Source of the DNA: Isurus oxyrinchus
Lineage: Eukaryota
Direction: 5' to 3'
Assembly: GCA_026770705.1 (NCBI GenBank)
Contig: JANJGN010000052.1
Span: 3,844,001 to 3,908,000 of the forward strand
DNA: 64,000 nucleotides
The notes under the pieces are model-generated. The model worked only from the letters and a program-made list of their open reading frames with translations. It ran no database searches and had not been told where the DNA came from. Numbering within the stretch: position 1 is the first letter of the stretch; every line of letters starts with the position of its first letter. Position numbers and translations under genes: made by a program. Positions 40-63,854 of this stretch are shown here, piece by piece.

Positions 40-321
40 ATGCACCACAGGATCTCTCAATTACTTCTCTTGATATGATTAACGCTTCATCGATCAATAT
101 AATTGAGGGGAATTCTGCAGTGATAATCTGCTCTGTCGAGAGCTTCCCAGCTTCTAACCTGACGTGGCGACATCTTAATGTCCCAATGAACAGAACAAGT
201 TCCAACAATGAGCTGTGGTTGGTGATTCCTCACGTTACATCCAGGGACACTGGAGACTATCAGTGTGTGGCAGAGAATGAACATGGAGCAGTGGAGGGAT
301 TCATAACCATCACTGTGGAAT
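40..321 (+). CDS. Gene A C2-set Ig exon (282 nt, phase 1-1)
   Basis: tttttag|ATGCACCA...GTGGAAT|gtgagt; encodes APQDLSITSL...CSVESFPASNLTW...DTGDYQCVAENEHG. Confidence 0.92.
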
Positions 322-358
322 GTGAGTTAACACAAACTTCAACATTACTCTCACATAT

Positions 359-389
<31 letters not shown>

Positions 390-3300
390 GACACGTGCAC
401 ACAAACAAGCATTCATGTGCAATCCCACATGTGCACAGGTGTGCACGCCTGCATGCTCACACACAGAAGCATACATACAGAATCACACGTGTGCTTGCTC
501 ACACACACACAGACATGAGTGAGTTGTCTGTTCTCCCTGTGCTGCACTGGAGTGTTGCTCCAGATTCTGCTCTGAAACACTGACGACATCAGCTGAACAA
601 GACCCTGTATTGGACGAGCAGCCCCCTGCACAGAGAATTGTAGGTTTATCACTCAATACCCCATTATTCTAAAGCAATTCCTCCACTGTCAAATCCCTGT
701 GAACCTCCTGATGATGTGAAAGACACTTTCTTTTCTTCTAGCCCGACAGTGTCTCCTCTGGTGGAAGGCTGTAATTACAGCGTGACAGTTTACATATCCA
801 CATGCAGCAAGAGCTGAACAACACTCAGCTTGGGCTGAGACAATTAATGCATCACAAGCACCAGGCAGTGATCATGTCCAACAAGAGAGAATCTAACCAT
901 CTCCCCTTGATGTTCAGTGAGTTTACTATCACTGAATCCCCCACAATCAACATCCTGGGGGATGTTAACCAAACTACTAACTGGACCGGCCAATAAAACT
1001 GTGGCTATAGGAGCCGGTCAGAGGCTGGGAATTCTGTGGGGGTGAAAAACTCACCACCACCTCCTCAAAGGCAATTAGGGATGGGTAATAAATGCTGGTC
1101 TAGATAGATACATCCACTTCCCATGAATGTACAAAAAGAAAAACACCGGCAGTGACCATTATAAAAGTTGACATAGGAACTTAAAACAGGAAAGAAACCT
1201 TGAAATGCACATAGACACCAAATAGAGAGAGATGTATCATGGAGTCTTGCTGTGCACTGTGTTTGCTCACAATGAAACCTTTATTTGTATTTAGATGCAC
1301 CACGGAACCTATCAATTACTTCTCTTGATATGATTAACGCTTCATCGATCAATATAATTGAGGGGAATTCTGCAGTGATAATCTGCTCTGTCGAGAGCTT
1401 CCCAGCTTCTAACCTGACGTGGCGACATCTTAATGTCCCAATGAACAGAACAAGTTCCAACAATGAGCTGTGGTTGGTGATTCCTCACGTTACATCCAGG
1501 GACACTGGAGACTATCAGTGTGTGGCAGAGAATGAACATGGAGCAGTGGAGGGGTTCATAACCATCACTGTGGAACGTGAGTTANNNNNNNNNNNNNNNN
1601 NNNNNNNNNNNNNNNNNNNNNNNNNNNNNNNNNNNNNNNNNNNNNNNNNNNNNNNNNNNNNNNNNNNNNNNNNNNNNNNNNNNNNNNNNNNNNNNNNNNN
1701 NNNNNNNNNNNNNNNNNNNNNNNNNNNNNNNNNNNNNNNNNNNNNNNNNNNNNNNNNNNNNNNNNNNNNNNNNNNNNNNNNNNNNNCATACACATGCACA
1801 CACTCACTCATGCACAGATGTATACAAACAGGCACACGCACACATGCGCATACACACACACACGCACACATAAACATACTCACTAGAGCAAAAACACAAA
1901 CACACAAAAACACACAAACACAAACACATGTGTGAGTTCCCTGTCCTCTCTCAGTGCTGCACTGGAGTCTCGGTATCAGCTCCGATTCTGTGTTGAAGGA
2001 AGGTAAACTCCAGATCAACAAGACCCTGAATTGGATGAGCAACCTCCTGAACAGAGAATTGTAGATTTACCCCTCAGTGCTCCATCAATCAAATACAATC
2101 ATTGCCTGTCAAGCCCTTGGGTATATCCTGAGGATGTGAAAGTTTCTTTCATTCTAGGTGGACAGCACCTCTACTGCAGTTTGACTGTTTACATAGGCAG
2201 TGCCCATTATAAATTTGACAGTGGAAGTTATATGGAGGGAAGGTATCTGGAAATGCATACAGACATCAGATACAGAGAGATGATGCATGGAGTCTAGCTG
2301 TAAACTGTGCTTGCTCACATTAAACACTTGATTTGTTCTTAGATGCTCCACAGAATCTCTCATTTACTTCTCTTGATATGATTAACGCTTCATCGATCAA
2401 TATAATTGAGGGGAATTCTACAATGATAATCTGCTCTGTCGAGAGCTTCCCAGCTTCTAACCTGACGTGGCGACATCTTAATGTCCCAATGAACAGAACA
2501 AGTTCCAACAATGAGCTGTGGTTGGTGATTCCTCACGTTACATCCAGGGACACTGGAGACTATCAGTGTGTGGCAGAGAATGAACATGGAGCAGTGGAGG
2601 GGTTCATAACCATCACTGTGGAATGTGAGTGTGGAGATACATTTGTTTGTTTGTTGTCTCCGTGGTCTCCGTGGAGCCATTGGGATCGTGTTGTTTTTAA
2701 TCCAGTTTTCTTCAATCCTCGCTCAGTCCACGTTATCCACACACCCAATTTTTCCTCTCCCTTTCTGTTTTTGCTCTCAGTTTCTCCTTCAATGGTTGTG
2801 AGGACAAGGCTGTCAGGTCTTCGTTTCCAATCTCCGTACTTGACGACCTTTCTCTCTCTAACTGTCCTGAACAACCCTTTTAATTGCTGAACTTCTCATT
2901 CTTTAATTGATAAATATTATATATTAATGTTACATGGATTACTTTGAAATGCAATACCTGTATTCATAAATTGCTTAGAAATTACTAAACATTCAACAGC
3001 CAGTGAAGCATTATCGAAGTGAGCTCACTGTTCTAATGTAGGAAACACAGGTACTGATTTGTGCACAGCAAGATCCCGCAAACCACCATGTGATAATGAG
3101 CTGATAGTCGATTATTTCAGTGAGGTTGGTTGTTACATGTGTAGAGACTACATACCCTTTAGGGAGGGAAGCATGTCTCGATGTGGATGTGACTCCAGTC
3201 TCAAACACCAACATGGTTAACTCTTACCTGCCCTCTGAACTGGTCTCCCAGTTTGGGACAAACCAGTGGTTCAGGAGGAATACCCCCCACCACCTTCTCA

Positions 3301-5794
3301 AGGGAAACTAGGGATGGACAATAAATGTCAGCATTGCCCGAGAATGAGTATTTAAACACTGAGTGAGTGTATCGCTTCTCGAGATACATCGGAGCATCAT
3401 TGTAAACCTGTAGTGCAGTAATTAATGGCTGTTTTTACAGGTAGAGACTCCAGTAAATGGACAGTAGGATTGTTCACGGCTGGGATCATGTTGAGTGTTT
3501 TCCTGGCTGGAATCTTCATCTTCATCTGTGTGAGAAAGTAAGTCTGAAGATTTAACTTGATTTTAATATAAACATTTGCTTCAATGTTCTATCCTTAAGT
3601 CGGTGATTGTTTCCCTTGGGAGCAGCACCAGGTCCCTCTCTGTAAGTGGTCCCTGTGTCCACTCTGATCCGGAGAGAACCTTTCATTGTCCTGTATCCAG
3701 GTAAACAATCACGAGACCCAGAGATTCCTCACTCTGCACGATTACTCCTGGATAAATATTTGCTTCAATGTTCTTTCCTGAAGTCGGTGATTGTTTCCCT
3801 TGTGTTAAGCGCTAGATGCCTCTCCGTAACTGGTCTCTTTTGTCCCTTACGATCCAGACAGTGTTTTTCATTGCCCGTTATCCAGATGAATAATAATCAG
3901 TTGCTGTGATCTGGAAGGTGCTGCCTGAAAGGGCGCTGGAAGCAGATTTAATAGGATCTTTCAAAAGGGGAATTGGATAAATACTTGAAGGGGGAACATT
4001 TGAAGGGCTATGGGGGGAAGAGCAGGGGTGGAGGGGGGGTCAAAGATATGGCGTGTCATTATAATGATATTATACCTTAGGCTTATTTATTGTACAAGAA
4101 ACAAAGCACCAATCGCTCACAGGGATTGGGTGAGAATGTTAATGATTTGTTTATCAAGACTCGGCACGAGAACAGTTATACATATGGAGAAAGATTGAAG
4201 GCATCAGAGCCATGAGTGTGTGTTCTGCTCAAAGCAAAAGTCAAACTAAGATTGGATCACATGACACACTTCCATTATAGTGATGTCACGCTGATACCCC
4301 TTATTGGAACTAGAGACAGTCCATTCGTTGGTGTAAGGTTACACTGGGCTCTGTGTCTGTGCTGCACTGACTCTCTGCTATATGATAACCACAGTGTGAT
4401 ATTGTGTTATTGCAGGAGAAAGACAGCGATGGAGGAGAGAGTTTCAGGGACCAGTGACATTGTATTGACCCCCAGTCCACTCTCTGTGAAGCACCAGGTA
4501 CAGGAGCTGTTTACACTCACTCCAAAGCTTCTATCTCAGTGTGTAGACAACACATGTCCCAGATTCCCAGCCAGGTTACCCACAGATATCTAACTGTGTA
4601 GTCAGATATGGCTCAGTATGTAGCATTGTCTCTCGCTCCCTCCCCCTCTTCCCTCCATCACTCGCTCTTTGACCAGAAACCTGAACGCAATAATGACAAG
4701 GCACCTGATGTCAGTAGTGAGGGAGTGCTGCACTGTCCTAGGGTCTGTGCTGAGGGAGTGCTGGAGTGTCAGAAGGTCAGTACTGAGGGAGTGTTGCACT
4801 GTCAGAGGGTCTGTACTGAGGGAGAGCTAGACTGTCAGAGGGTCAGTACTGAGGGAGTGCTGCGCTGTCATAGGGTCAGTACTGAGGGAGTGCTGGACTG
4901 TCGGACGGTCAGTACCGAGGGAGTGCTGCACTGTCGGAGGGTCAGTACTGAGGGAGTGCTGCACTGTCGGATGGTCAGTACTGAGGACAGTACTGAGTGA
5001 GTGCTGCACTGTCAAAGAGTCCATTTGCAAGGGGTGCTGCCCTCTTGAAGGGGCAGTTCCGAGGGAGTGCTGCACTGTCAGCAGAGAGCACTGAGAGAAC
5101 ATTGCAGTGTTCGAGGTGCCTCTTTCAGAATAGTTGTATAATGCTGACCATGTTTACCATCTTATCTGGTCCCATGGCCACATTTCCAACACTGTAGCAG
5201 TGTCTCCCTTCAATAAAATTCCTTCATTGGCGTGAGGTTCTTTGTGTGTCTGTGTTTGTGAATAATGGGGCACAAATCTCATGATTGGGATGGTAACATA
5301 GGACTTCAAGACTCAGGTCTGCGATAGCGAGAGAGATTACATGATAAATAGAGAGAGAAAGCAAGAGAGAGAGAGAGAAAGAGAGACAGAGAAAGAGATT
5401 GAAAAAAAGGAGACAGAGAAAGAGAGTGAAAAAGAGGGTTAAACCCATTGAGACATGACTGACAGTAACGAGGCTGCAGAATAACTTAACCCTATCAGTG
5501 CCAGTAAATGATGTGAGGATGTCTTCTGTTTCTATTTCTCTGTAGGGTAAACAGAACGTGCTGATTACTGAGCCCCGGAACACAACCAGAGACACAACTA
5601 GTGAGGGGGAGACCCCAGCTCCCCGGGGTCTCTCTGAAGGTCCAGTGGGAGGCGATGTTGGACATGGGAACCCCGACAAACCCGACGAGCTTTTCTACGC
5701 CAACATCAACTTTTCAAAGCTGCCCAGCGGTGACAGGACTGTGCACAGGAGCGAGGACACGGAATACGCACAGATCAGGTTCCAGAAAAACTGA
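40..5794 (+). CDS. Siglec-like inhibitory receptor, gene A, 3' part (5' end upstream of window). Exons 40-321, 1295-1576, 2343-2624 (C2-Ig), 3441-3537 (TM), 4416-4497 (cyto1), 5546-5794 (cyto2, ITIM+ITSM)
   Basis: All exons have AG/GT boundaries and compatible phases (1-1, 1-1, 1-1, 1-2, 2-0, 0-stop). The spliced frame is open. C2 exons have C...W...DTGDYQC and join as VE(Y/H)AP, as in CD22/MAG/Siglecs. Confidence 0.9.
790..1145 (+). mobile_element. Non-LTR retrotransposon (shark HER1-like, CR1/L2 group) 3' fragment
   Basis: Degenerate RT-end ORF (ESPTINILG...NWT) and a 3' tail 'ggcaattagggatgggtaataaatgctgg' shared with many copies in the window; mirrored at 55615-55980. Confidence 0.65.
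1295..1576 (+). CDS. Gene A C2-set Ig exon (282 nt, phase 1-1)
   Basis: Near-identical copy of 40-321 with canonical splice sites. Confidence 0.92.
2343..2624 (+). CDS. Gene A membrane-proximal C2-set Ig exon (282 nt)
   Basis: Near-identical copy with canonical splice sites; carries the NSTM variant. Confidence 0.92.
3441..3537 (+). CDS. Gene A transmembrane exon
   Basis: tttacag|GTAGAGAC...AGAAA|gtaagt; RDSSKWTVGLFTAGIMLSVFLAGIFIFICVRK is an uncharged hydrophobic helix followed by basic residues. Confidence 0.9.
4416..4497 (+). CDS. Gene A cytoplasmic exon 1
   Basis: ttgcag|G AGA AAG...CAC CAG|gtacag; phase 2-0 bridges the TM and last exon exactly (RKTAMEERVSGTSDIVLTPSPLSVKHQ). Confidence 0.8.
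4705..5090 (-). repeat. 33-bp minisatellite (ctccctcagtactgaccctccgacagtgcagca)n
   Basis: Tandem units visible in reverse orientation. Confidence 0.85.
5546..5794 (+). CDS. Gene A terminal exon with ITIM (LFYANI) and ITSM/ITIM-like (TEYAQI) motifs
   Basis: tgtag|GGTAAA, phase 0; ends ELFYANINFSKLPSGDRTVHRSEDTEYAQIRFQKN*, the same layout as CD33-related Siglec tails (LHYASL/TEYSEI). Confidence 0.9.
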   Translation, partial: GKQNVLITEPRNTTRDTTSEGETPAPRGLSEGPVGGDVGHGNPDKPDELFYANINFSKLPSGDRTVHRSEDTEYAQIRFQKN

Positions 5795-5984
5795 GTGTGA
5801 AACAGGGAGCGGGGCTGTGGGGTGTGTGCAGCCAACATGGCCAAATAGTAATGAACACAAATATGATGTTGCTCAACTTTTTTTTATTGGTTTTAACTGA
5901 GCTTTCTGAATGCTGCACCTTTTTCCATGCTGTAAAAGATTGTGAGAAGCTTATGAATTATGTATAATTTTACATCTGTTAATA

Positions 5985-10448: not shown

Positions 10449-11769
10449 TGTAAAATAGAGTCCATGTGTCTGTGTCCACATGTGTCTGTGATGTGTTTGT
10501 GTGAGACTTATTGGAATTAGAGGAAGCTGGTCTGGGTGTTTTGATGGAAGAAGAGAAGTTAGGTTTGAACTGTTTATTAGGTAAACATGGGGAAGTTTTA
10601 GAATGTGAAGTGTAAAGGGGGCAATTTGCATTTTAAGTTAAACCAAACGAGATTGTTTTCAAAGACGGAGAGAAATGTGTCACCGAGCCAGGTGAAGATA
10701 AGAAACAGTGTGTTTATTTTTGCCAAAGATTACTGGTAAAACTTAGGGCTATGAGAGATTTGTATTATTACAAAAATAAAGTCCAAAGACATAGTGAAAC
10801 AATGGGAATTTGCATTCAAAGGGGAAAATATGTATCAAGGAGTGAAGACTGTGTGTAAGGGTCGGTGTTTTTAAGATCTTACAATGATGAAAAACCTTCA
10901 GCCTGCATGTACCAAGCTGCTGCCTCCAGGGACTGAAGTTAAGAGAATTCACTTTGAACTCAACTGTTCAGCGTATCGTTTACTGTTCCTGGGACATTTA
11001 AAATCTCTGTCTTTTACTGTTGCCTTAACAGAGATAACAGAGCGTCTTCAACAAAATGCAAATCTGAATCAAATAACCACCAGGATGCCACAGGTAACCA
11101 ATTAACTTTGAACAGCTACAAACTTCAGCAATCTACGCCACAAAGACAAGCAAAGGTATTAATCATATATTCTTTCAAATTTTTGTCGGACTCTAACTTT
11201 TTAATTCTGACGTGTGTAAATGGAAGTTAAATTAATTAAGGGATTTAGAAGTTATTATAGTAGTAATTTATAGACAGATGTGTATGCTTAAAAATCATTT
11301 TTTCTTGTTAATCAATGTTTAATTTAGTTTTATAAAATCCTCTTACACTGAAAAAAGGGTGAACTCTATTGTAAAGTGTTCTGGGACATCCAGAGACCAT
11401 GCTGTACAGAAGAGATTTGACTGGAGTAGCAAGTGTTTTACTTACAGGAGAATGAGTCCCCAGGATTGTAGAGTCAATCCTGTCAGATGAATGACTAACT
11501 GGAGACACTTCAGGGAGCTGATCTAATTCTGGAAATGTTCAGTTTACCAGGATCGGAAGAGAGATGATCTCCCTCTCCTGACTGCATCAGACAAGTGGTG
11601 AACCTGTTGAGGTGAACAGAATTACCTGTTAAACCTCTTAACCTCATTACTACTGAATTCAAAGCCCACATCTCAAAACATACAAGTTGGAAATTAGTTG
11701 TGACAGTTGTTTCAAGTTTCCCTCCAGGATTTGAACAGCTCAGCATTTACCATCTGTTATGTCATAACA
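10449..11769 (+). mobile_element. Putative LTR-like element with a nested ~270-bp insert
   Basis: tgtaaaa...gtcataaca termini; 3' end resembles that of 6086-6980. Confidence 0.35.
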
Positions 11770-13054
11770 GAGCTTCCTTCAACTTAACCAACAAGCCAAA
11801 AATGTATTGAACTGTTTAAAGGAGACCTGTTTTTCAAAAGTACCAGATTAGGCTCTGATCAAAAATGGCTGTCACGAGTCACCTGATTGCTGATACTGCA
11901 AACTTGATCACTTCTCTGGAAAGCTTCAAATGAATTGCACTACAGACATGTTGCATGAAGGTTCTCACTGAGATGTGTCAGGGTCCACTTGAAACTGGGA
12001 CTCCCTTAAAAATGCAAAGTGCTGGGCTTTGATCACTGTAGGTCTATCAAGATAATGGGAACTGCTCACCATGCAGATATTCATCAATCATTCAAAACCC
12101 CTTGTGGAGGATGAAATGTCTCCATCTCCTGTTGATTTATATCTTGAAATGCACCAAATGTTTCAGAGATGCAAAGATCAAAAAATGGGATTACTTGGTC
12201 TGTAACAATGAATGCAAGACATGCTGATCGAATTTCCTTTGGGAATATACAAACAGGAGTTTAGCAACAGGTTCTGTCAAGCAGATATAAGAGAAAGTAG
12301 GAGGAAAAGGAAAGATGGCAGTCACCCAAAAACACTGCTGGAAAAGAGCAGAAATTCTCTCTCTCTCTCTCTCTTTCTGAAGCTAACAGAGCATCTTCAA
12401 CAAGTCCAAATCTGAATCAAATCACCACAAGGATGCCACAGGAAACCAATCAACTTTGCAAACTTCAACAATCTACACCTCGAAGACAAGCAAAGCTATC
12501 AATCATATATTCATTTAAATTTTTATTGGACTCTAACTTTTTATTTCTGACATGTGTGTGTGTGTGTGGCTGTCTCTCTGCCTGTCTGTGTGAGCATGAG
12601 TGTGTCTGCCTGCGCGAGCGTGTGTCAGTGTGAACATATGTGAGTGTGTGTGTGTGTCTGAGTGAGTCTATGTNNNNNNNNNNNNNNNNNNNNNNNNNNN
12701 NNNNNNNNNNNNNNNNNNNNNNNNNNNNNNNNNNNNNNNNNNNNNNNNNNNNNNNNNNNNNNNNNNNNNNNNNNNNNNNNNNNNNNNNNNNNNNNNNNNN
12801 NNNNNNNNNNNNNNNNNNNNNNNNNNNNNNNNNNNNTATTGTTGCATCTTAATTATTAATGTTATTTAAAAATAGTGATCACACAAGCCTGGTTTCTAAG
12901 GAAATGAAACTGCCAACAATTTAGAGTAAAGTGAAACGTACAGGAATAATCTATTTATTTTGAGCTGATGATATATAATTATACATGAGGCATGTTGCTA
13001 ATTTCAAACATCATCTGAAATATGGCAGGTCTGACAGAGCAGCTTTCCCTCAGC

Positions 13055-13290
13055 GCTCACCCTCCGACAGTGCAGCACTCCCTCAGTACTGACCCTCTGA
13101 CAGTGCAGCACTCCCTCAGTACTGACCCTCCGACAGTTCAGCACTGCCTCAGTACTGACCCTTTGATCGAGCAGGGTCTCCCTCAGTACTGACCTCCTGA
13201 CAGTGCAGCACTCCCTCAGTACTCACCCTCTGACAGTGCAGCACTCCCTCAATATTGACCTTCCAACAGTGCAGCACTCCCTCAGCACTC
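13055..13290 (+). repeat. 33-bp minisatellite
   Basis: Tandem cagtactgaccct...gcagcactccct units. Confidence 0.85.
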
Positions 13291-13875: not shown

Positions 13876-14399
13876 CTGACTGAGTCGAGTTCACAGTTTC
13901 ACACGTTGCTAGGGACCACTTTTCCACCTCTCTGTCAGACTGTGTGTATCTGACAGCAGGTCAGGCAGAAATAGTCCAGAATGCGCTGTGGTTTTGTAGC
14001 ATTGAAACAACGACAGGAACTAAATGAGTGCTGCACCAAATAAAGACATGGAGTTACCACACCAAAAAACCACGTGACTTCCCCAGTTTCACATCTCCCT
14101 CAAACACAGAAAAACTGGGTTAACACTGACCCTCCTCCCAGAGCCAGTTCACCTCGTGTCCGATGCAGTCAAGAGAGGAAGATCATCTCTCCTCCGATCC
14201 TGGTAAACTGAACATTTCCAGAATTAGATCAGATCCCTGAAGTGTCTCCAGTTAGTCATTCATCTGACAGGATTGACTCTACAACCCTGGGGACTCATTC
14301 TCCTGTAAGTAAAACACTTGCTGCTCCTGTCAAATCTCTTCTGTACAGCATGGTCTCTGGATGTCCCAGAACACTTTACAATAGAGTTCACCCTTTTTT

Positions 14400-14625
14400 C
14401 GAAGTGTGGTTACTGTTGTAATGTAGGAAACGCAGCAGCCAATTAGCGCACAGCAAGCTCCCACAAACAGCAATGTGATCATCTGTTTTTGGTGATGTTG
14501 GTTGAGGGATAAATATTGGTGCCAGGACACCGGGGAGAATTCCCCCTTGCTCTTCCTCCAAATAGTGGCTGTGGGATCTTTCACACCCGCCCGAGAGGGC
14601 AGACGGGGGACTCGGTTTAGTGTCT
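14400..14625 (+). mobile_element. DeuSINE-like (SacSINE1/AmnSINE1-type) SINE fragment; other copies at ~3020-3130, 42870-43240, 43740-43915(-), 45330-45630
   Basis: Shared core 'tgtaggaaacgcagcagccaat...gcacagcaagctcccacaaacagcaatgtga...gagggataaatattgg...caggacaccggggaga'; family name from recollection of the consensus. Confidence 0.55.
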
Positions 14626-15849: not shown

Positions 15850-15939
15850 CACAGAGGGAGGAGCACAGGAAGAGGTCATTCAGCCCAAGCAGAGCGTGTG
15901 GGCAGTTCCTCCCCAGGCGAGCAGTCGGACAGGTCCTGG
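15850..15939 (+). other. Putative non-coding exon 1 of gene B (5' end approximate)
   Basis: Strong donor tgg|gtaagt; block conserved at 29700-29786 and 30345-30434; preceded by TGACTCA and ETS-like sites. Confidence 0.55.
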
Positions 15940-16350: not shown

Positions 16351-16411
16351 ATGGAATATCTGGGAGTGGACAATGATCGGGAAATCTACTTCCTCCTGTC
16401 ACTTCTCCAAG
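16351..16411 (+). CDS. Gene B signal-peptide exon (coding part)
   Basis: MEYLGVDNDREIYFLLSLLQ + G|gtaata, phase 1, joins the V exon as ...LLQVGLSQEW; acceptor at 16330. Confidence 0.75.
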
Positions 16412-18500: not shown

Positions 18501-18869
18501 TTGGACTGTCACAAGAGTGGAAAGGTGACACTCCACGAGAGGTGACAGCGCAGGAAGATTCGTGTGTACAGATTCCATGTCATTACAGTTATCCATCACA
18601 TTTGGAAAGCCAACCACGAGTCGGAGTCTGGTTTAATAATGAGAATCAGATTCCTGGATCTCCCATTGCCTTTCACTCCAAGGATCACAGTCACGAGTTA
18701 CCACGGTTCCACCATCGGACCCGGCTGTCTGGAGACCTGAAAGATGGCGACTGTTCCCTGATTATAAACAACATCAGACGGGAAGATGCAGGACCTTATT
18801 TCTTCAGGATAGAATTTGACAGCAGTAATAGTTACAACTACTATCCTGTAACCCAGCTTCACGTTTCTG
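18501..18869 (+). CDS. Gene B Siglec V-set (sialic-acid-binding) domain exon, intact
   Basis: 369 nt, phase 1-1. Hallmarks: CVQIPCHYSYP, W, GDCSLII (Siglec-type B-E intrasheet Cys), DAGPYFFRIE with the essential Arg at 18806-18808 and no F-strand Cys. Confidence 0.95.
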
Positions 18870-21626: not shown

Positions 21627-21629
21627 CAC

Positions 21630-23727: not shown

Positions 23728-23824
23728 GGCGAGATTCCAATGAATGGAAAGCAGGATTGCTTGGAGCTGGAATCTGTTTGAGTGTTGGACTGAGTGGATT
23801 CTTCATTTTCAAGTCTGTGAGAAA
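23728..23824 (+). CDS. Gene B transmembrane exon (intact, 97 nt, phase 1-2)
   Basis: tttacag|GG CGA GAT...AGA AA|gtaagt; RDSNEWKAGLLGAGICLSVGLSGFFIFKSVRK; same length and phase as, and homologous to, the gene A TM exon. Confidence 0.85.
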
Positions 23825-52145: not shown

Positions 52146-52428
52146 GTTTGAGCCTCACGCCTGGTGGTTGGTTCCTGTCCCAGCTGAGGACTGGCGCCAT
52201 GTTGTACATCCTGTAAATCCCGCCAGTCTCTCCCAGCACTTTCCATGCCTGGCGCTATTTCCATGGTGCGCTTCAAATCGATGTCGGCTTCTGCGAGTAA
52301 ACGGCTCTGAATGGCGTTGGGGTGAACGACACAAACCAATCGGCCCCGCAACATGTCATTGAGTGTGTCTCCGAGGTCCCAGTGCTCAGTCACCTGCTTC
52401 CACTTCACTGTATAGGTTGCGATGGACA
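51240..52428 (-). mobile_element. Degenerate Ty3/Gypsy LTR retrotransposon gag-protease remnant
   Basis: LNDMLRGRLVC...IQSRLLAE (gag), CRFKGAECHHCHKKG (Zn knuckle), VNGQPLVM / LKTHTGE / GEGPSLLGRDW (protease region); frameshifted. Confidence 0.8.
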
Positions 52429-53222
52429 CCAATAACTGGACTGTCTCTAGTTCCAATAAGGGGTATCAGCGTGACATCACTATAATGGAAGTGTGTCATG
52501 TGATCCAATCTCAGTTTGACATTTGCTTTGAGCAGAGCACACACTCACAGCTCTGATACCTTCAATCTTTCTCCATATGTATAACTGTTCTCATGCCGAG
52601 TCTTGATAAACAAATCATTAACATTCTCACCAAATCCCCTGTGAGTGATTGGTGTTTTCTGTCTTATACAGTTAATAAGCCTAAGGTATAATATCATTAT
52701 AATGACACGCCATATCTTTGACCCCCCCTCCACCCCTGCTCTTCCCCCCGTAGCCCTTCAAATGTTCCCCCTTCAAGTATTTATCCAATTCCCCTTTTGA
52801 AAGATCCTATTGAATCTGCTTCCACCGCCCTTTCAGGCAGCACCTTCCAGATCACAGCAACTGATTATTATTCATCTGGATAACGGGCAATGAAAAACAC
52901 TCTCTGGATCATAAGGGACAAAGTGACCAGTTACGGAGAGGCACCTGGCGCTTAACACAAGGGAAACAATCACCGACTTCAGGAAAGAACATTGAAGCAA
53001 ATGTTTATCCAGGAGTAATCGTGCAGAGTGAGGAATCTCTGGGTCTCGTGATCATTTACCTGGATACAGGACAATGAAAGGTTCTCTCCGGATCAGAGTG
53101 GACACAGGGATCACTTACAGAGAGGGACCTGGTGCTGATCCCAAGGGAAACATTCACCGACTTAAGGAAAGAAAATTGAAGCAAATGTTTATATTAAAAT
53201 CAAGTTAAATCTTCAGACTTAC

Positions 53223-53319
53223 TTTCTCACACAGATGAAGATGAAGATTCCAGCCAGGAAAACACTCAACATGATCCCAGCCGTGAACAATCCTACTGTC
53301 CATTTACTGGAGTCTCTAC
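53223..53319 (-). CDS. Gene D transmembrane exon
   Basis: Reverse complement of 3441-3537. Confidence 0.9.
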
Positions 53320-55108
53320 CTGTAAAAACAGCCATTAATTACTGCACTACAGGTTTACAATGATGCTCCGATGTATCTCGAGAAGCGATACACTCACTCA
53401 GTGTTTAAATACTCATTCTCGGGCAATGCTGACATTTATTGTCCATCCCTAGTTTCCCCTTGAGAAGGTGGTGGGGAGTCTTCCTCCTGAACCACTGGTT
53501 TGTCCCAAACTGGGAGACCAGTTCAGAGGGCAGGTAAGAGTTAACCATGCTGGTGTCTGAGACTGGAGTCACATCCACATCGAGACATGCTTCCCTCCCT
53601 AAAGGGTATGTAGTCTCTACACATGTAACAACCAACCTCACTGAAATAATCAACTATCAGGTCATTATCACACGGTAGTTTGCGGGATCTTGCTGTGCAC
53701 AAATCAGTACCTGTGTTTCCTACATTACAAAAGTGTGCTCACTTCGATAATGCTTCACTGGCTGTTGAATGTTTAGTAATTTCTAAGCAATTTATGAATA
53801 CAAGTGTTGCATTTCAAAGTAATCCATGTTACATTTATATATAATATTTATCAATTAAAGAATGAGAAGTTCAGCAATTAAAAGGGTTGTTCAGGACAGT
53901 TAGAGAGAGAAAGGTCTTCAAGCACGGAGATTGGAAACGAAGACCTGACAGCCTTGTCCTGACAACCATTGAAGGAGAAACTGAGAGCAAAAACAGAAAG
54001 GGAGAGGAAAAATTGGGTGTGTGGATAACGTGGACTGAGCGAGGATTGAAGAAAACTGGATTAAAAACAACACGATCCCAATGGTTCCACGGAGACCACG
54101 GAGACAACAAACAAACAAATGTATCTCCACACTCACGTTCCACAGTGATGGTTATGAACCCCTCCACTGCTCCATGTTCATTCTCTGCCACACACTGATA
54201 GTCTCCAGTGTCCCTGGATGTAACGTGAGGAATCACCAACCACACCTCATTGTTGGAACTTGTTCTGTTCATTGGGACATTAAGATGTCGCCACGTCAGG
54301 TTAGAAGCTGGGAAGCTCTCGACAGAGCAGATTATCATTGTAGAATTCCCCTCAATTATATTGATCGATGAAGCGTTAATCATATCAAGAGAAGTAAATG
54401 AGAGATTCTGTGGAGCATCTAAGAACAAATCAAGTGTTTAAAAGTGAGCAAGCACAGTTTACAGCAAGACTCCATGCATCATCTCTCTGTATCTGATGTC
54501 TGTATGCATAGCCAGGTCCCTCCACTCCATATAACTTCCATTGACAAATTTATAGTGGGCACTGCCTATGTAAACAGTCAAACTGCAGTTACATTCTCCC
54601 AACAGTAGAGGTGCTGTCCACCTAGAATGGAAGAAACTTTCACATCCTCAGGATATACACAAGGGCTTGACAGGCAATGATTGTATTTGATTGATGGAGC
54701 ACTGAGGGGTAAATCTACAATTCTCTGTTCAGGAGGTTGCTCATCCAATTCAGGGTCTTGTTGATCTGGAGTTTACCTTCCTTCAACACAGAATCAGAGC
54801 TGATACCGAGACTCCAGTGCAGCACTGAGAGAGGACAGGGAACTCACACATGTGTTTGTGTTTGTGTGTTTTAGTGTGTTTGTGTTTCTGCACAAGAGAG
54901 TATGTTTATGTGTGCGTGTGTGTATGTGTTTGTGCATGTGTGCATGTGCCTGTTTGTATACATCTGTGCATGAGTGAGTGTGTGCATGTGTATGTCTATG
55001 TGTGTGCACATGTGACTGTGTGTGTGAGTTGAGTGTGTGTGTGTTTCTGTGTATGTGTTTCAACATGCATCACTGTGTGTGTAAGTGTGCGTGTATGTGT
55101 CTACACAT

Positions 55109-55159
<51 letters not shown>

Positions 55160-57433
55160 TGATGTTGAAGTTTGCAGTAACTCACGTTCCACAGTGATGG
55201 TTATGAACCCCTCCACTGCTCCATGTTCATTCTCTGCCACACACTGATAGTCTCCAGTGTCCCTGGATGTAACGTGAGGAATCACCAACCACAGCTCATT
55301 GTTGGAACTTGTTCTGTTCATTGGGACATTAAGATGTCGCCACGTCAGGTTAGAAGCTGGGAAGCTCTCGACAGAGCAGATTATCACTGCAGAATTCCCC
55401 TCAATTATCTTGATCGATGAAGCGTTAATCATATCAAGAGAAGTAATTGATGGGTTCCGTGGTGCATCTAAATACAAATAAAGGTTTCATTGTGAGCAAA
55501 CACAGTGCACAGCAAGACTCCATGATACATCTCTCTCTATTTGGTGTCTATGTGCATTTCAAGGTTTCTGTCCTGTTTTAAGTTTCTATGTCAACTTTTA
55601 TAATGGTCACTGCCGGCGTTTTTCTTTTTGTACATTCATGGGAAGTGGCTGTATCTATCTAGAGCAGCATTTATTACCCATCCCTAATTGCCCTTGAGGA
55701 GGTGGTGGTGAGTTTTTCACCCCCACAGGATTCCCAGCCTCTGACCGGCTCCTGTAGCCACAGTATTTATGGCCGGTCCAGTTAGTTGTTTGGTTAACAC
55801 CCCCCAGGATGTTGATTGTGGGGGATTCAGTGACCGTAAACTCACTGAACATCAAGGGGAGATGGTTAGATTCTCTCTTGTTGGACATGATCACTGCCTG
55901 GTGCTTGTGTGGTGTGAACATTACTTGTCATTTCTCAGCCCAAGCTGAGTGTTGCTCAGTTCTTGCTGCGTGTGGATATGTAAACTGTCACGCTGTAATT
56001 ACAGCCTTCCACCAGAGGAGACACTGTCGGGCTAGGAGAAAAGAAAATGTCTTTCACATCATCAGGATGTTCACAGGGATTTGACAGTGGAGGAATTGCT
56101 TTAGAATAATGCGGTATTGAGTGATAAACCTACAATTCTCTGTGCAGGGGGCTGCTCGTCCAATACAGGGTCTTGTTCAGCTGATGTCGTCAGTGTTTCA
56201 GAGCAGAATCTGGAGCAACACTCCAGTGCAGCACAGGGAGAACAGACAACTCACACATGTCTGTGTGTGTGTGTGAGCAAGCACACGTGTGATTCTGTAT
56301 GTATGCTTCTGTGTGTGAGCATGCAGGCGTGCACACCTGTGCACATGTGGGATTCCACATGAATGCTTGTTTGTGTGCACGTGTCTGTGTGTGTGTGTTT
56401 GTGTGAGTGTGTGTGTATATATGAGAGTAATGTTGAAGTTTGTGTTAACTCACATTCCACAGTGATGGTTATGAACCCCTCCACTGCTCCATGTTCATTC
56501 TCTGCCACACACTGATAGTCTCCAGTGTCCCTGGATGTAACGTGAGGAATCACCAACCACAGCTCATTGTTGGAACTTGTTCTGTTCATTGGGACATTAA
56601 GATGTTGCCACGTCAGGTTAGAAGCTGGGAAGCTCTTGACAGAGCAGATTATCACTGCAGAATTCCCCTCAATTATATTGATCGATGAAGCATTAATCAT
56701 TTCAAGAGAAGTAAATGAGAGATCCTGTGGTGAATCTAAGAACAAATCAAGTGTTTAATGTGAGCAAGCAAAGTGCACAGCAAGACTCCACGCATCATCT
56801 CTCTGTATCTGATGTCTGTATGCATTGGCAGGTACCGTCCCTCCATATAACTTCCACTGTCAAATTTATAATGGGCACTGCCTATGTAAACAGTCAAACT
56901 GCAGTTACATTCTCCCACCAGTAGAGGTGCTGTCTACCTAGAATGAAAGAAACTTTCACATCCTCAGGATTTTGCCAAGGGATTTACGGGAATGAATTGT
57001 ATTTGATTGATGGAGCACTGAGGGGTAAATCTACAATTCTCTGTTCAGGAGGTTGCTCATCCAATTCAGGGTCTTGATCTGGAGTTTACCTTCCTACAAC
57101 ACAGAATCGGAGCTGATATCGAGACTCCAGTGCGGCACTGAGAGAGTAGCGGGACCTCACGTGTCTGTATGTTTGTGTTTGTGTTTCTGCAGATGTGAGT
57201 GTGTTTGTGTGGGTATGCACACATGTGTCTGTGTGTGCATGTGTGTATGTGTTTGCGCAAATGTGCGTGTGTCTTTGTGTATATTTCTGTGCATAAGTGA
57301 ATGTGTGTACATGTGTATGTGTATGTGTGTGCACGTGTGAGTGTGTGTGTGTGAGTTGAGTGTGTGTATGTTTCTGTGTAGGTTTTTGCACATGTATGAC
57401 TGTGTGTAAATGTGCATGTATGTGCCCCCACAT

Positions 57434-57493
<60 letters not shown>

Positions 57494-59384
57494 AAGATGT
57501 TGAGGTCTGTGTAACTCACGTTCCACAGTGATGGTTATGAACCCATCCACTGCTCCATGTTCATTCTCTGCCACACACTGATAGTCTCCAGTGTCCCTGG
57601 ATGTAACGTGAGGAATCACCAACCACAGCTCATTGTTGGAACTTGTTCTGTTCACTGGGACATTAAGATGTCGCCACATTAGGTTAGAAGCTGGGAAGCT
57701 CTTAACAGAGCAGATTATCACTGCAGGATTCCCCTCAATTATATTGATCGATGAAGCGTTAATCATACCAAGTGATGTAATTGAGACATCCTGTGGTGCA
57801 TCTAAAAACATAGAAAAATTTTAATGTGAGCAAATATAGTGCACAGCAAGACTCCATGCATCATGTCTCTGTATCTGATGTCTGAATGCATTTCCAGGTA
57901 ACTTCCCTCAGGATAAGGTCTTATGGCACATTTATAATTGACACTGCCTATGTAAACTGTCACACTGCAGTTGCATTCTCCCACCAGTAGAGGTGTTGTC
58001 CATTTAGAATGAAAGAAGCTTGCTTTCACATCCTCAGGATTTCGCAAAGGGCTGGACAGGCAATGAATTTTATTTGATCGAGGGAGCATTTAGGGGTAAA
58101 TCTACATTTCTCTGTTCAGGAGGTTGCTCCATCCAATTCAGGGTCTTGTTGATCTGGAGTTTACCTTCCTTCAACACAGAATTGGAGCTGACACCGAGAC
58201 TCCAGTGCAGCACTGAGAGAGGACAGGGAACTCACGCGTGTGTATGTGTGTGTTTGTGTTTCTGCACAAGTGAGCGTGTTTGTGTGTGTATGCACACATG
58301 TGTCTGTGTTTGCACTTGCGCATGTGTCTGTGTGTCTACGTCTGTCCATGAGTGAGAGTATGTGCATGTGTGTGTCTATGTGTGGGCATGAATATGTGTG
58401 TGTTTGAGATGGGTGTGTATTTTCCTGTGTATGTGTTTGTGTGTGTATGACTGTGTGTGTATAATTATGCATGTGTGTGCCTACAGGTGTCTGTCTGGGT
58501 GTGTGTGTGTGTCTGTGTGCGTGTGCGTGTGCGTGTGTGTGTGTGTGTCTGTAGGTGATGTTGAAGTTTGCAGTAACTCACGTTCCACAGTGATGGTTAT
58601 GAATCCCTCCACTGCTCCATGTTCATTCTCTGCCACACACTGATAGTCTCCAGTGTCCCTGGATGTAACGTGAGGGATCACCAACCACAGCTCATTGTTG
58701 GAACTTGTTCTGTTCATTGGGACATTAAGATGTCGCCACGTCAGGTTAGAAGCTGGGAAGCTCTCGACAGAGCAGATTATCACTGCAGAATTCCCCTCAA
58801 TTATATTGATCGATGAAGCATTAATCATTTCAAGAGAAGTAAATGTGAGATTCTGTGGAGCATCTAAGAACAAATCAAGTGTTTAATGTGAGCAAGCAGC
58901 GTGCACAGCAAGAATCCATGCATCATGTCTCTGTATCTGATGTTGGAATGCATTTCCAGGTACCTTCCCTCATGAAAAAATACTGTCACATTTATAATGG
59001 GCACTTCCTCTGTAAACTGTCACACGGCAGTTGCTTTTTCCCACCAGTAGAGTTGCTAACCCTCTAGAATGAAAGAAACATCCTTTAACACTCTCAAGAT
59101 GTCCCCAAAGGCTTGACAGGCAATGAATTGTATTTGATCGATGGAGCACTGAGGGCTAAATCTACATTTCTCTGTTCAGGAGGTTGCTCATCCAATTCAG
59201 GGTCTTGCTGATCTGGAGTTTACCTTCCTTCAGCACAGAATCAGAGCTGATACCAAGACTCCAGTGCAGCACTGAGAGAGGAGAGGCCGCTCATACTTGT
59301 GTGTGTTTGTGTGTGTGTGTGTGTGTACTTCTGCGCAAGTGAGTTTGTATTTGTGTGTATGCGCGTGTCTGTCAGCGCATATGT

Positions 59385-59417
<33 letters not shown>

Positions 59418-60609
59418 TGTGTGTGTATGTCTGTGCTTGAGGGAGTGTGTGTGCATATGTGTCTCTATGTGTGCGCATGAATGATTGTATGTGTGAGTTG
59501 AGTTTGTGTGTGTTTCTGTGTATGTGTTTGAACGTATGTTTGTGTGTAAGCGTGCATGTTTGTGTCTACACATGAGTGTTTTTGCATGTGTGAGTGTGTG
59601 TGTGTGTGAGTGATGTTGAAGTCTGTGTACACTCACATTCCACAGTGATGGTTATGAATCCCTCCACTGCTCCATGTTCATTCTCTGCCACACACTGATA
59701 GTCTCCAGTGTCCCTGGATGTAACGTGAGGAATCACCAACCACAGCTCATTGTTGGAACTTGTTCTGTTCATTGGGACATTAAGATGTCGCCACGTCAGG
59801 TTAGAAGCTGGGAAGCTCTTAACAGAGCAGATTATCACTGCAGGATTCCCCTCAATTATATTGATCGATGAAGCGTTAATCATATCAAGAGAATTAATTG
59901 AGAGATTCAATGGTGCATCTAAATATATGGAAAGATTTTAATGTGAGCAAATATAGTGCACAGCAAGACTCCATGCATCATGTCTCTGTATCTGATGTCT
60001 GAATGCATTTCCAGGTAACTTCCCTCAGGATAAGGTCTTATGGCACATTTATAATTGACACTGCCTATGTAAACTGTCACACTGCAGTTGCATTCTCCCA
60101 CCAGTAGAGGTGTTGTCCATTTAGAATGAAAGAAGCTTGCTTTCACATCCTCAGGATTTCGCAAAGGGCTGGACAGGCAATGAATTGTATTTGATTGATG
60201 GAGCACTTAGGGGTAAATCTACAATTCGCTGTTCAGGAGGTTGCTCATCCAATTCAGGGTATTGTTGATCTGGCGTTTACCTTCCTTCAACACAGAATTG
60301 GAGCTGACACCGAGACTCCAGTGCAGCCCTGAGAGAGGAGAGGGAGCTCACGCGTGTGTATGTGTGTGTCTGTGTTTGCTTTTCTGCACAGGTGAGTGTG
60401 CTTGTGTGTGTATGCACACCTGTATCTGTGTGTGCGCATGCACGCGTTTCTGTGTGTCTACGTCTGTCCATGAGTGAGTGAATGTGCATGTGTGTGTCTA
60501 TGTTTGGGCATGAATATGTGTGTGTGATTGAGATGGGTGTGTATTTTCCTGTGTATGTGTTTGTACGTGTATGAATGTGTGTATATAATTATGCATGTGT
60601 ATGCTTACA

Positions 60610-60654
<45 letters not shown>

Positions 60655-63600
60655 GCGTGTCTGTATGTGTGTGTGTGTGTGTGTGTGAGAGATGTTGAAG
60701 TTTGCAGTAACTCACGTTCCACAGTGATGGTTATGAATCCCTCCACTGCTCCATGTTCATTCTCTGCCACACACTGATAGTCTCCAGTGTCCCTGGATGT
60801 AACGTGAGGAATCACCAACCACAGCTCATTGTTGGAACTTGTTCTGTTCATTGGGACATTAAGATGTCGCCACGTCAGGTTAGAAGCTGGGAAGCTCTCG
60901 ACAGAGCAGATTATCACTGCAGAATTCCCCTCAATTATATTGATCGTTGAAGCGTTAATCATATCAAGAGAAGTAAATGAGAGATTCTGTGGTGCATCTA
61001 AAAACATATAAAGATTTTAATGTGAGCAAGCACAGTGCACAGCAAGACTCCATGCATCATCTCTCTGTATCTGATGTCTGAATGCATTTCCAGGTTCCTT
61101 CCCTCAGGATAAGAACTTATTTCACATTTACAATGGGCACTGCCTATGTAAACTGTCACACTGCAGTTACATTCTCCCACCAGTGGAGGTGTCCATCTAG
61201 AATGCAGGAAACTCCCTTTCAGATCCTCAGGATGTCCCCAAGGGCTTCAAAGGCAATGAATTGTGTTTGATCGATGGAGCACTGAGGGGTAAATATACAT
61301 TTCTCTGTTCAGGAGGTTGCTCCATCCAGTTCAGGGTCTTGTTGATCTGGAGTTCACCTTCCTTCAACACAGAATCAGAGCTGATACCGAGACTCCAGTG
61401 CAGCACTGAGAGAGGAGAGGGTACCCACACGTTTTTGTCTGTGTATGTGTGTGTTGGCTTGTGTGTGTGTATGTTTNNNNNNNNNNNNNNNNNNNNNNNN
61501 NNNNNNNNNNNNNNNNNNNNNNNNNNNNNNNNNNNNNNNNNNNNNNNNNNNNNNNNNNNNNNNNNNNNNNNNNNNNNNNNNNNNNNNNNNNNNNNNNNNN
61601 NNNNNNNNNNNNNNNNNNNNNNNNNCACTCACATTCCACAGTGATGGTTATGAACCCCTCCACTGCTCCATGTTCATTCTCTGCCACACACTGATAGTCT
61701 CCAGTGTCCCTGGATGTAACGTGAGGAATCACCAACCACAGCTCATTGTTGGAACTTGTTCTGTTCATTGGGACATTAAGATGTCGCCACATCAGGTTAG
61801 AAGCTGGGAAGCTCTCGACAGAGCAGATTATCACTGCAGAATTCCCCTCAATTATATTGATCGATGAAGCGTTAATCATATCAAGATAAGTAATTGAGAG
61901 ATTCTGTGGTGCATCTAAAAACATATAAAGATTTTAATATGAGCAAATATAGTGCACAGCAAGACTCCATGCATCATGTCTCTGTATCTGATGTCTGAAT
62001 GCATTTCCAGGTACCTTCCCTCAGGATAAGAACTTATTTCACATTTACAACGGGCACTGCCTATGTAAACTGTCACACTGCAGTTACATTCTCCCACCAG
62101 TGGAGGGGTCTATCTAGAATGCAGGAAACTCCCTTTCAGATCCTCAGGATGTCCCCAAGGGCTTCAAAGGCAATGAATTGTATTTGATCGATGGAGAACT
62201 GAGGGGTAAATCTACAATTCACTGTTCAGGAGGTTGCTCATCCAGTTCAGGGTCTTGTTGATCTGGAGTTTACCTTCCATCAACAAAGAATCGGAGCTGA
62301 TACCGAGACTCCAGTGCAGCACTGAGAGAGGAGAGGGTACCCACACGTTTTTGTGTGTGAATGTGTGTGTTGGCTTGTGTGTGTGTATGTTTCTGCACAA
62401 CAAGGATCTGTGTGTGCACGCACGCATGTGTGTTTGTGTGTGTGCGCACGTGTGTCTGTCTGTGCGTGTGTGTGTGTGTGAGTTAAGGTTGTGTGTCCTT
62501 CTGCATGTGTGTCTGTTTGTGTGTGTGTGTGTGTGTGAGTGTGTGTGTGTATGTGTGTGTGTGTGTGTGAGTGATGTTGAAGTTTGCAGTAACTCACGTT
62601 CCACAGTGATGGTTATGAACCCCTCCACTGCTCCATGTTCATTCTCTGCCACACACTGATAGTCTCCAGTGTCCCTGGATGTAACGTGAGGAATCACCAA
62701 CCACAGCTCATTGTTGGAACTTGTTCTGTTCATTTGGACATTAAGATGTCGCCACGTCAGGTTAGAAGCTGGGAAGCTCTCGACAGAGCAGATTATCACT
62801 GCAGAATTCCCCTCAATTATGTTGATCGATGAAGCGTTAATCATATCAAGAGAATTAATTGAGAGATTCTGTGGTGCATCTAAAAACAAATAAACATCAA
62901 TTAACTTAAACTGACTGTGAAGCACTTTGAAATACACTGAGAATGTGAAAGGTTTGATATCAATGCAGGTTCTTTCACCACAAAGCCCGTAATCCAGGCA
63001 GACAAATCAGTTCAGTATTGAGGGAGTGCTGCAATGACAGAGGGTCAGTACTGAGGGAGTGCTGCACTGTCAGTGTGTCAGTACTGAGGGAGTGCTGTAG
63101 TGTCAGACGGTCAGTACTGAGGGAGTGCTGCATTGTCAGTGTGTCAGTACTGAGGGAATGCTGCACTGTCAGAGGGTCAGTACTGAGGGAGTGCTGCACT
63201 GTCAGTGGGTCAGTACTGAGGGAGTGCTGCACTGTCAGATGGTCAGTAAAGAGGGGGTGCTGCACTGTTTGACGGTCAGAACTGAGGGGGTGCTGCACTC
63301 TCAGAGGGTCAGTACTGAGGGAGTGCTGCACTGCGAAGATTCAGTACTGAGGGGGTGCTGCACTGTCGAAGGGTCAGTAGTGAGGGAATGCTGCAGTGTT
63401 GGAGAGTCAGTATTCAGGGACTGCTGCAGTGTCAGAGGTGAATTTGTATCAATTAAAGACTATTGATTTGTTGCTAAACACAATGCAGTTGTGGGATCTT
63501 GCAGTGTACTATGTGGAGCTTTCTAGCTAATGTAGATGGAAGGGAGTCGGTACTTACCTTGCACAGTTAGTACGAGGGTCCGCTCCGATGAAACAGATGG

Positions 63601-63854
63601 ATATCTCACTCTGCAGCTGAGAGTGTGTCCGTGGTGTTTGAGTGATGGGATCAGGGTCAGAACAGAAGTATAGGTCAGAGTGACACCATGCTGAGTTACA
63701 GTGTTTGAGACTGATCCAGGTACGTCAGTGGGAGTGTCCCTGGTTAAGACAGGTGCTGCTGTTCCATTGCACGTTGTGTTGAAGGTGCAGCTTACATCCA
63801 CACGCTTTCCTGCAATAATTTCAGCAGGGAATATCGTGGGTTTATCTGTGAAAT
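53223..63854 (-). CDS. Siglec-like gene D (5' end beyond window): D2 63854-63558; nine C2 exons 62879-62598, 61914-61633, 60997-60716, 59918-59637, 58863-58582, 57801-57520, 56735-56454, 55467-55186, 54418-54137; TM 53319-53223; no cytoplasmic exons found
   Basis: All exons are open with AG/GT boundaries. D2 is near-identical to gene B D2. The last three C2 exons, TM and introns are an inverted near-copy of gene A. Confidence 0.88.
63015..63435 (-). repeat. 33-bp minisatellite
   Basis: Tandem units; same intron position as the arrays in gene B. Confidence 0.85.
63558..63854 (-). CDS. Gene D Siglec domain-2 exon
   Basis: Reverse-complement homolog of 19270-19566; conserved Trp replaced by Arg. 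Confidence 0.9.

Follow-up and report, generated by a model that had tools for sequence, protein, structure and literature searches.

Organisation of the locus

The window analysed here is a 64-kb stretch of Isurus oxyrinchus DNA (64,000 nucleotides of contig JANJGN010000052.1). It is AT-rich vertebrate DNA, rich in micro- and minisatellites, and contains four gene bodies resembling those of the Siglecs, the sialic acid-binding immunoglobulin (Ig)-like lectins. The four bodies, named A to D, were located by tblastn of exons on the window and by inspection of the exon borders, and their exon anatomy and lesions were observed directly. They appear to draw on one phase-compatible exon set, consisting of a leader, a V-set domain, a second domain (D2), a C2 exon that can be repeated, transmembrane (TM) exons of two types and tails of two types. 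We consider it probable, at roughly 75%, that the window belongs to a large cluster of Siglec-type receptor genes, specific to sharks and quick to duplicate, which has partly decayed.

An earlier note on this DNA had described the locus as paired inhibitory and activating receptors that share one ectodomain kit and differ in their signalling ends. All of the exons that it listed were recovered at or near the expected positions. The intact inhibitory/activating pair was not recovered within the window, as gene C is apparently a pseudogene, gene D a tail-less partial duplicate, and the tail of gene B cannot be connected to the rest of its gene. A complete signalling end appears to be present in the window only on the inhibitory gene A, and the pairing, as read from the assembled sequence, holds for the shark gene family and not for this locus.

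Siglec identity of the shared domains

The V exon of gene B (18501-18869, plus strand) was compared with the PDB sequences. The leading matches were Siglec-5, MAG, Siglec-8, CD33, Siglec-10, Siglec-7 and sialoadhesin, with E-values of 5e-15 to 2e-12. A total of 17 distinct Siglec sequences were followed by Siglec-15 (3e-7), and the first non-Siglec in the ranking was pIgR (1e-6). Pfam assigned the exon to V-set (1.7e-12) and Ig_CD22 (6.7e-9). The GPYFFRIE stretch of gene B, which is also found in gene C in the second frame, aligned with GSYFFRVE of Siglec-5 and contains the F-strand arginine, the residue with which Siglecs bind the carboxylate of sialic acid. The F strand reads YFFR and has no canonical cysteine, while the cysteine pattern of the domain follows that of the Siglecs, with SCVQIPC and DCSLII aligning with LCVLVPC and NCSLSI of Siglec-5. 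The V domain is in this way observed to be a member of the Siglecs, and the kit of genes A to D can be classed as Siglec-type, the V domain clearly so, as the earlier note had held. We infer by analogy that such a domain would bind sialic acid.

The D2 exon was assigned by Pfam to C2-set_2 and aligned to residues ~126-214 of MAG, CD33, Siglec-10 and Siglec-5. Nectin-4 scored slightly above the Siglecs in this comparison, so the D2 feature is not exclusive to them.

Tandem arrays of a shared C2 exon

The C2 exon is 282 nt long, begins and ends in phase 1, is bounded by the acceptor TTTTTAG and the donor GTGAGT, and encodes a generic I-set domain (Pfam Ig_3/I-set). It occurs 14 times in the window, and its donor motif was found 13 times against 0.01 occurrences expected by chance. 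Three of the copies belong to gene A and nine to gene D, one lies dead in gene B and one is halved in gene C. The proposal that all four genes carry the same C2 exon is therefore borne out by the intact copies of A and D, while B and C retain it as remnants.

Genes A and D each carry the exon as a tandem array, a feature that had been missed in the earlier note. The last three exons of the gene A array were identified by tblastn and Pfam (Ig_3/I-set) at 40-321, 1295-1576 and 2343-2624 on the plus strand. The array of gene D (54137-62879, minus strand) comprises nine exons with a period of ~1.05 kb and CA-rich introns, located in order of transcription at 62598-62879, 61633-61914, 60716-60997, 59637-59918, 58582-58863, 57520-57801, 56454-56735, 55186-55467 and 54137-54418. 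All 12 copies of A and D are open, possess canonical splice sites and share 93-99% DNA identity.

Over codons 15-93 of these 12 exons the silent difference (pS) was 0.024, compared with 0.18 over codons 1-14, and the non-silent difference (pN) of the exon core was 0.015. The array introns differed by 10-15% in BLAST alignments and by a mean of 27% over the 200 nt upstream of the exons. The homogenisation of the exon core at silent sites, 2.4% against 10-27% in the introns, is a direct observation that is expected from gene conversion. Conversion of the kind known from mammalian pairs, which the earlier note had cited, is supported for the C2 arrays only. Recent duplication would suffice for the likeness of the V exons of B and C and of the D2 exons of B and D, since the flanking introns match as well as the exons do (94-98%).

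The copy numbers of both arrays depend on the assembly, which contains four runs of N within the window, all of them intronic or intergenic, with no exon interrupted. One run (1585-1786) begins 8 nt past the end of the second A exon, behind its GTGAGTTA donor, and another (61477-61625) begins 7 nt past the D exon at 61633-61914. Given that two of the four gaps lie inside arrays, that CA microsatellites are present in every array intron and that minisatellites occur throughout, the gene structures might not be real but mostly an assembly artefact, in which haplotypes or paralogues were collapsed or mis-joined to give the A/D inversion and the C2 arrays. We regard this as very unlikely. A and D differ by 4%, and the array copies differ by 1-7% in exons and by at least 10-15% in introns. 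The copies of the two arrays also correspond in order (A1/D7, A2/D8, A3/D9), the open frames and splice sites are preserved in 12 of 12 exons, and many C2 copies in series are likewise present in RefSeq models from other sharks, namely Stegostoma P0012 (1463 aa), Cetorhinus P0199 and Carcharodon P0201.

Gene A and its truncated inverted duplicate, gene D

Only the 3' part of gene A lies in the window, its V and D2 exons and the rest of its array being located to the left. The TM exon (GRDSSKWTVGLFTAGIMLSVFLAGIFIFICVRK, 3441-3537, plus strand) encodes a helix without a charged residue and ends in phase 2. It is followed on the same strand by a first tail exon (4416-4497, phase 2 to phase 0), which matches models P0003 and P0013, and by the last coding exon (5546-5794, with the stop at 5792-5794). 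The latter contains an immunoreceptor tyrosine-based inhibitory motif (ITIM), LFYANI, and a sequence resembling an immunoreceptor tyrosine-based switch motif (ITSM), TEYAQI, with the two tyrosines 23 residues apart. The protein ends in DELFYANINFSKLPSGDRTVHRSEDTEYAQIRFQKN before the stop. The TM and tail exons matched the RefSeq models P0003 (Cetorhinus) and P0013 (Carcharodon) at 62-82%, and the ITIM-plus-ITSM tail attributed to gene A, with its intact TM exon, was confirmed. Gene A can be read as a long inhibitory Siglec, represented here by its 3' part, with a C2 array, an uncharged TM segment and an ITIM/ITSM tail. If it behaves as the mammalian CD33-related Siglecs do, its phosphorylated tail would recruit SHP-1/SHP-2 after binding of sialoglycans by the V domain.

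Positions 1-4334 of the window have an inverted duplicate at 52426-56773 (minus strand, 96% identity), with 1-1584 and 1787-4334 corresponding to 56773-55178 and 54994-52426, respectively, at 96-97% identity. The edge of the duplication falls 80 nt short of the position matching the first tail exon of A. The TM exon of gene D (53223-53319, minus strand), whose protein sequence is identical to that of A, is left without tail exons because the duplication is truncated, and if unspliced it reads VRK and then TAA. No tail exon was found in the 17 kb downstream when this region was queried with ~200 shark Siglec proteins, in agreement with the tail-less end that had been described for this gene. 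At its other end, the D2 exon of gene D lies at 63558-63854 (minus strand) and the V exon lies past the end of the window. Gene D would have arisen recently as an inverted copy of A, from which it differs by 4%; it is severed from the tail exons and appears to be either dead or without a tail.

An independent tail-less decoy receptor was also considered for gene D and was rejected, as nothing supports a polyadenylation site after the unspliced TM exon. Unrelated long open reading frames (ORFs) on the minus strand (52456-50702) start exactly at the end of the A/D duplication. They have no Pfam match; they may be of the retroelement gag type, and this would account for gene D having lost its tail exons.

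Gene B: an intact ectodomain and a detached tail

The exons of gene B are all located on the plus strand. The coding part of the leader (MEYLGVDNDREIYFLLSLLQ, 16351-16411), the V exon with its YFFRIE arginine and Siglec cysteine pattern, and the D2 exon (19270-19566) are intact. The D2 exon is 95% identical to that of gene D in DNA, flanks included, and 97.6% identical in protein, which upholds the earlier claim that the two genes share it. The single C2 copy (22213-22484) is dead, as it carries an in-frame TGA at 22341-22343 (CGA to TGA), and its last 11 nt and the donor have given way to a repeat that starts at 22484. The TM exon (RDSNEWKAGLLGAGICLSVGLSGFFIFKSVRK, 23728-23824) is intact, ends in phase 2 and shows 93% identity to the Carcharodon model P0015.

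A tail-like exon follows at 23888-23944 or 23888-23973. Read in the phase that the TM exon imposes, it gives NRNQIEPSC and then a stop, whereas another frame of 23888-23973 yields VDEYRGPVYEN; no alternative GT donor that would fit this second frame was found in the TM exon. The last exon of the B type (KKDEKVLEMKSNRGVNPDTDDDLYANCDFAKDSVYGNL and a stop, 26287-26403) starts in phase 0, carries the motifs YANC and SVYGNL and ends in DDLYANCDFAKDSVYGNL before the stop. In P0015, an exon of 28 codons running from phase 2 to phase 0 bridges the TM exon and the last exon. This linking exon is not present between the two exons of gene B, and no N gap lies there. Since the TM exon ends in phase 2, the last exon starts in phase 0 and the linker is absent, the YxN tail exons of gene B would not be joinable in frame to its TM exon as assembled. 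The YxN-rich tail described earlier therefore stands in its motifs and fails in its connection. Gene B can be regarded as a two-domain CD33-like gene which, as assembled, would end a few residues after the membrane.

The intron before the last exon is filled by a minisatellite of 2.1 kb with a 24-nt unit (24029-26191), which creates a false ORF of 720 residues. Upstream of the leaders of both B and C, at a distance of ~400-500 nt, we observed copies of this linking first tail exon, all on the plus strand. One copy, homologous to residues 258-294 of P0015, precedes the B leader (15855-15939), and two precede the C leader (~29706-29797 and 30350-30434). Such an exon may have been recruited as a 5' exon, or it may reflect read-through from one gene into the next.

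Gene C: a terminal cassette behind broken Ig exons

Gene C also lies on the plus strand. Its leader exon (30845-30923) contains an ATG at 30863, and its V exon (31627-32000) is broken by a 1-nt deletion near 31747 and by a TAG at 31970-31972 (TAC to TAG). The V exon is 5 nt longer than that of gene B, a 6-nt in-frame loop difference being combined with the 1-nt deletion; the frame is lost and a stop follows after 44 codons. No D2 exon was found in gene C, where the similarity to B ends at 32206. The C2 exon is reduced to its 3' half (151 nt, 32526-32676), which retains the donor and has lost the acceptor and the first half.

Downstream of these remnants lies an intact terminal exon (DSGGEILHVILILGIRAVIFLVAVVITIAGVCVWERQTVKGSRQTV and a stop, 34340-34501) with a phase-1 acceptor, a stop at 34477-34479 and a donor at 34501. 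Its helix contains GIRAVIF, and the protein finishes with a tyrosine-free end of 13 residues, WERQTVKGSRQTV. An untranslated 3' exon follows at 35219-35560, with AATAAA near 35555. A block of ~65 nt within this exon is ~90% identical to the 3' untranslated region of the ITIM exon of gene A (5795-5900), and the untranslated end of the activating-type gene seems to be a former inhibitory tail exon that was retained. Given that the V exon is frameshifted and stopped, the D2 exon absent and the C2 exon halved, gene C is, to judge from these lesions, a pseudogene with a surviving terminal cassette. The arginine-bearing TM exon with a tyrosine-free tail that the earlier note had assigned to C is thus real, and the Ig exons attached to it are broken. 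By analogy with activating Siglecs, the buried arginine of such a cassette would dock an aspartate-bearing adaptor with an ITAM (immunoreceptor tyrosine-based activation motif) and would permit activating signalling.

The V exons of B and C were 95% identical in their frameworks and 94-98% identical in the flanking introns, which agrees with the common frameworks noted earlier. A central patch of 120 nt (18585-18705 in B, 31710-31835 in C) was only 67% identical and contained indels. By position, this patch spans the strands and loops between strands B and D of the domain, where the ligand specificity of mammalian Siglecs is set. The transcript contigs described below showed further variants of the patch, including one in which 78 nt are skipped (31717>31796). 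The patch points to loop hypervariability across paralogues.

Transcript contigs over gene C

Contigs of four runs were aligned to 29500-35400 at 90% likeness; their origin from RNA is our guess, and they are called RNA contigs on that basis. Three GT..AG splice joints were directly observed, each at an intron that had been predicted. The first (30434>30845) connects a tail-exon-1-like exon with the C leader, and the reading frame stays open across it. The second (30921>31625, cut +2) splices the C leader to the V exon, and the third (34500>35218, cut +1) joins the Arg-TM exon and the 3' exon. The limits of one contig coincide with the Arg-TM exon (34338-34501). The patch sequence of gene B is present on loose ends at 31838, and a loose end at 32524 carries a full C2 exon, which indicates that paralogues contribute to the contigs. 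Many of the contigs also have a T at 30898 that is missing from the leaders of B (16351-16411) and C (30863-30923). Without this T, the in-frame start is MEYLGVDNDREVYFLLSLLQ, as opposed to MIGKSYFLLSLLQ in most shark models.

The lesions described above could themselves be assembly errors or null alleles, in which case the window would hold an intact paired locus with C as a working activating gene and B as a working YxN gene. Gene models of the same design do exist in other sharks, the Arg-TM exon with its acceptor and 3' splice is intact and is found in RNA contigs, and one contig (X3 record 19) spans 31689-31883 with one gap and could carry a repaired frame. The lesions of the C V exon amount to two small changes only; however, the deletion lies outside a homopolymer and the TAC to TAG change is a substitution. 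The missing D2 exon, C2 acceptor and first half of C2 are structural losses rather than base errors, and the phase-2-to-0 linker of gene B is missing from gap-free sequence. We consider an intact pair at this locus unlikely.

The intact and transcribed Arg-TM exon might also belong to gene B, as one of two alternative ends of a single gene. The V and D2 exons of B would then be spliced either to their own TM exon or, ~10 kb further on, to the Arg-TM exon, with the Ig exons of C as skipped relics. The phases would allow it, as phase 1 is both the end phase of every Ig exon and the phase of the Arg-TM acceptor. Such a gene would account for an unconnectable B tail and dead C Ig exons beside a living Arg-TM exon, and the loose ends at 31838 suggest that a B-type V exon is expressed. 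Even so, no joint of this kind is among those listed (15 of 90), a leader exon spliced to the V exon of C sits in between, and in the relevant shark models the C2 exons of each gene are followed directly by the Arg-TM exon. Alternative ends of one gene are in our view distinctly unlikely, and the reading of gene C as a decayed gene with its own terminal cassette is retained.

A shark gene family with several signalling ends

The database searches were performed exon by exon rather than on spliced gene models. A HMMER scan of 1.8 billion representatives returned 290 matches below 1e-10. The best matches were shark RefSeq models from Carcharodon, Cetorhinus, Scyliorhinus, Chiloscyllium, Stegostoma and Mustelus. 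The names of these models, 'sialic acid-binding Ig-like lectin 8/10/12/13', 'CD33-like' and 'hemicentin-1-like', are automatic, unreviewed and assigned by similarity. The protein identity per exon to the Carcharodon and Cetorhinus models was 85-98%, which places the host among sharks near the lamniforms, in line with the cartilaginous-fish host that had been proposed from the sequence.

The signalling ends of the window were also found among these homologues. ITIM-plus-ITSM ends are present in P0003, P0016 and P0017, and YxN ends, such as SIYENV and SIYGNI, in P0026 and P0039. The TM end with the GIR arginine is present in P0006, P0170 (Scyliorhinus torazame) and P0022 (Chiloscyllium punctatum), whose gene models run from Siglec V and C2 domains into this end. 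The Arg-TM end of gene C has 80% protein identity to the end of P0006, and P0022 has the same GIR helix. As shark gene models join Ig exons to the Arg-TM exon, the paired design holds for the family, and the joining of Siglec Ig exons to an Arg-TM exon, which the earlier note had required of this or related species, is represented by these three gene models. When distant homologues of the ITIM tail and the Arg-TM end were sought through shared words of five residues, an approach that is uninformative on tetrapods, the matches came from sharks only.

A maximum likelihood tree of 37 V domains placed the V domain of the window and those of 19 shark proteins in one clade with support of 98/99; the tree has no non-Siglec outgroup and is based on a short domain, and its deeper forks have no firm order. 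Separate from this clade were the CD22-like and MAG-like genes of sharks, an actinopterygian group and a group of Siglec-12 and turtle sequences, which stands for the amniote CD33-related Siglecs. Within the shark clade, the Arg-TM model P0006 was the sister of the ITIM model P0001 (100/98).

Repeats and other features

A 33-nt minisatellite that reads HCQRVSTEGVL in one frame was observed in Siglec introns and in intergenic DNA on both strands. It is located at 4709-5081, 13030-13290, 19780-20740, 21628-22090, 35904-36456, 43231-43630, 45643-45980 and 63012-63440, and may be a substrate of the unequal and inverted exchanges in the window. An inverted repeat of 254 nt with 96% identity pairs 11350-11603 with 14147-14400. 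An ORF at 14330-14584 (minus strand) that includes a TM-like segment overlaps one of the two arms; this ORF had no Pfam match and no match from Siglec proteins.

Interpretation and comparison with known systems

Beyond the shark cluster proposed above, an explanation of how its genes arise can be put forward tentatively, with less than even confidence. The sharks may possess an old cassette-based Siglec system, in which a conserved Arg-TM exon and two tails were re-attached repeatedly to V exons and C2 arrays, and in which the CD33-type tail, with its tyrosines 23 residues apart, predates the split between cartilaginous and bony vertebrates. Re-attachment would proceed by duplication and exon-limited conversion, acting on genes with fast-changing V domains and C2 arrays of variable length, and the system would be common to at least the lamniform, carcharhiniform and orectolobiform sharks. 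Loci such as this window would record a constant birth and death of activating copies. The window illustrates such turnover with a truncated inverted duplicate, a gene without a link to its tail and a dead activating copy with a surviving membrane cassette.

Several points weigh against our description of the locus. The lesions of B and C rest on one assembly with gaps and microsatellites, so that an individual with intact alleles is possible, and gene B may use exons or phases beyond those that were recognised. A joint into the Arg-TM acceptor at 34340 is not among the 15 of 90 joints listed, so none of these splices an Ig exon to it. The three joints could stem from near-identical paralogues at other sites in the genome, given the guessed RNA origin of the contigs and their placement at 90% likeness. 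Any ITAM adaptor for the shark Arg-TM end, such as DAP12 or FcR-gamma, is putative, as no homologue of FcR-gamma was found in the 2014 shark data (PMC4016189).

Fishes have been described as possessing only Siglec-1, CD22, MAG and Siglec-15, with no inhibitory CD33-related Siglecs, in a study that covered bony fish (PMC7226832). The cassette system, if real, would contradict this published absence. The family is already labelled automatically in RefSeq, and the window is not the first evidence of it. A literature search found no paper describing a shark Siglec expansion, and the whale-shark genome paper reportedly does no more than list Siglecs among the Ig-domain families. The shark family would move the paired Siglec design back to the oldest jawed vertebrates, or would re-invent it in them, and would offer a natural series of exon-shuffled receptors.

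CD22 (Siglec-2) resembles the shark genes in its many C2 domains and in tail tyrosines that stand in a YxN context, as does its Grb2 site. The last motif of gene B, SVYGNL, also fits the ITIM pattern. The genes of the window differ from CD22 in that sharks possess separate CD22-like genes (P0040, P0045 and P0083), which fall outside their clade.

The human CD33-related Siglecs, such as Siglec-7, Siglec-9 and CD33, share with the shark genes the V-set YFFR arginine, the cysteines of the B and E strands and a C2-set second domain. They also share a membrane-proximal ITIM (here LFYANI) with a distal ITSM-like motif (here TEYAQI), and the spacing of 23 residues between the tyrosines is that of Siglec-7 and Siglec-9. 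In contrast to the mammalian members, none of which is their orthologue, the shark genes group in a clade of their own, can carry 9-12 copies of one C2 exon and include a second tail of the YxN type.

The primate pairs Siglec-5/14 and Siglec-11/16 offer the closest parallel in design. The pairing of Siglec-5 and Siglec-14 has been described (PMC4042635) and reviewed (PMC13358205). As in the shark genes, adjacent primate genes share near-identical and homogenised ectodomain exons, and one gene has an ITIM end while the other has an Arg/Lys TM end with a short tail. Activating copies are often lost in this group, as illustrated by the SIGLEC14 null allele and SIGLEC16P. The shark system differs from the primate pairs in that the activating partner within the window is dead and the family is far larger. 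It also differs in that its Arg-TM end is one conserved cassette rather than a recent derivative of the TM exon of a neighbouring gene.

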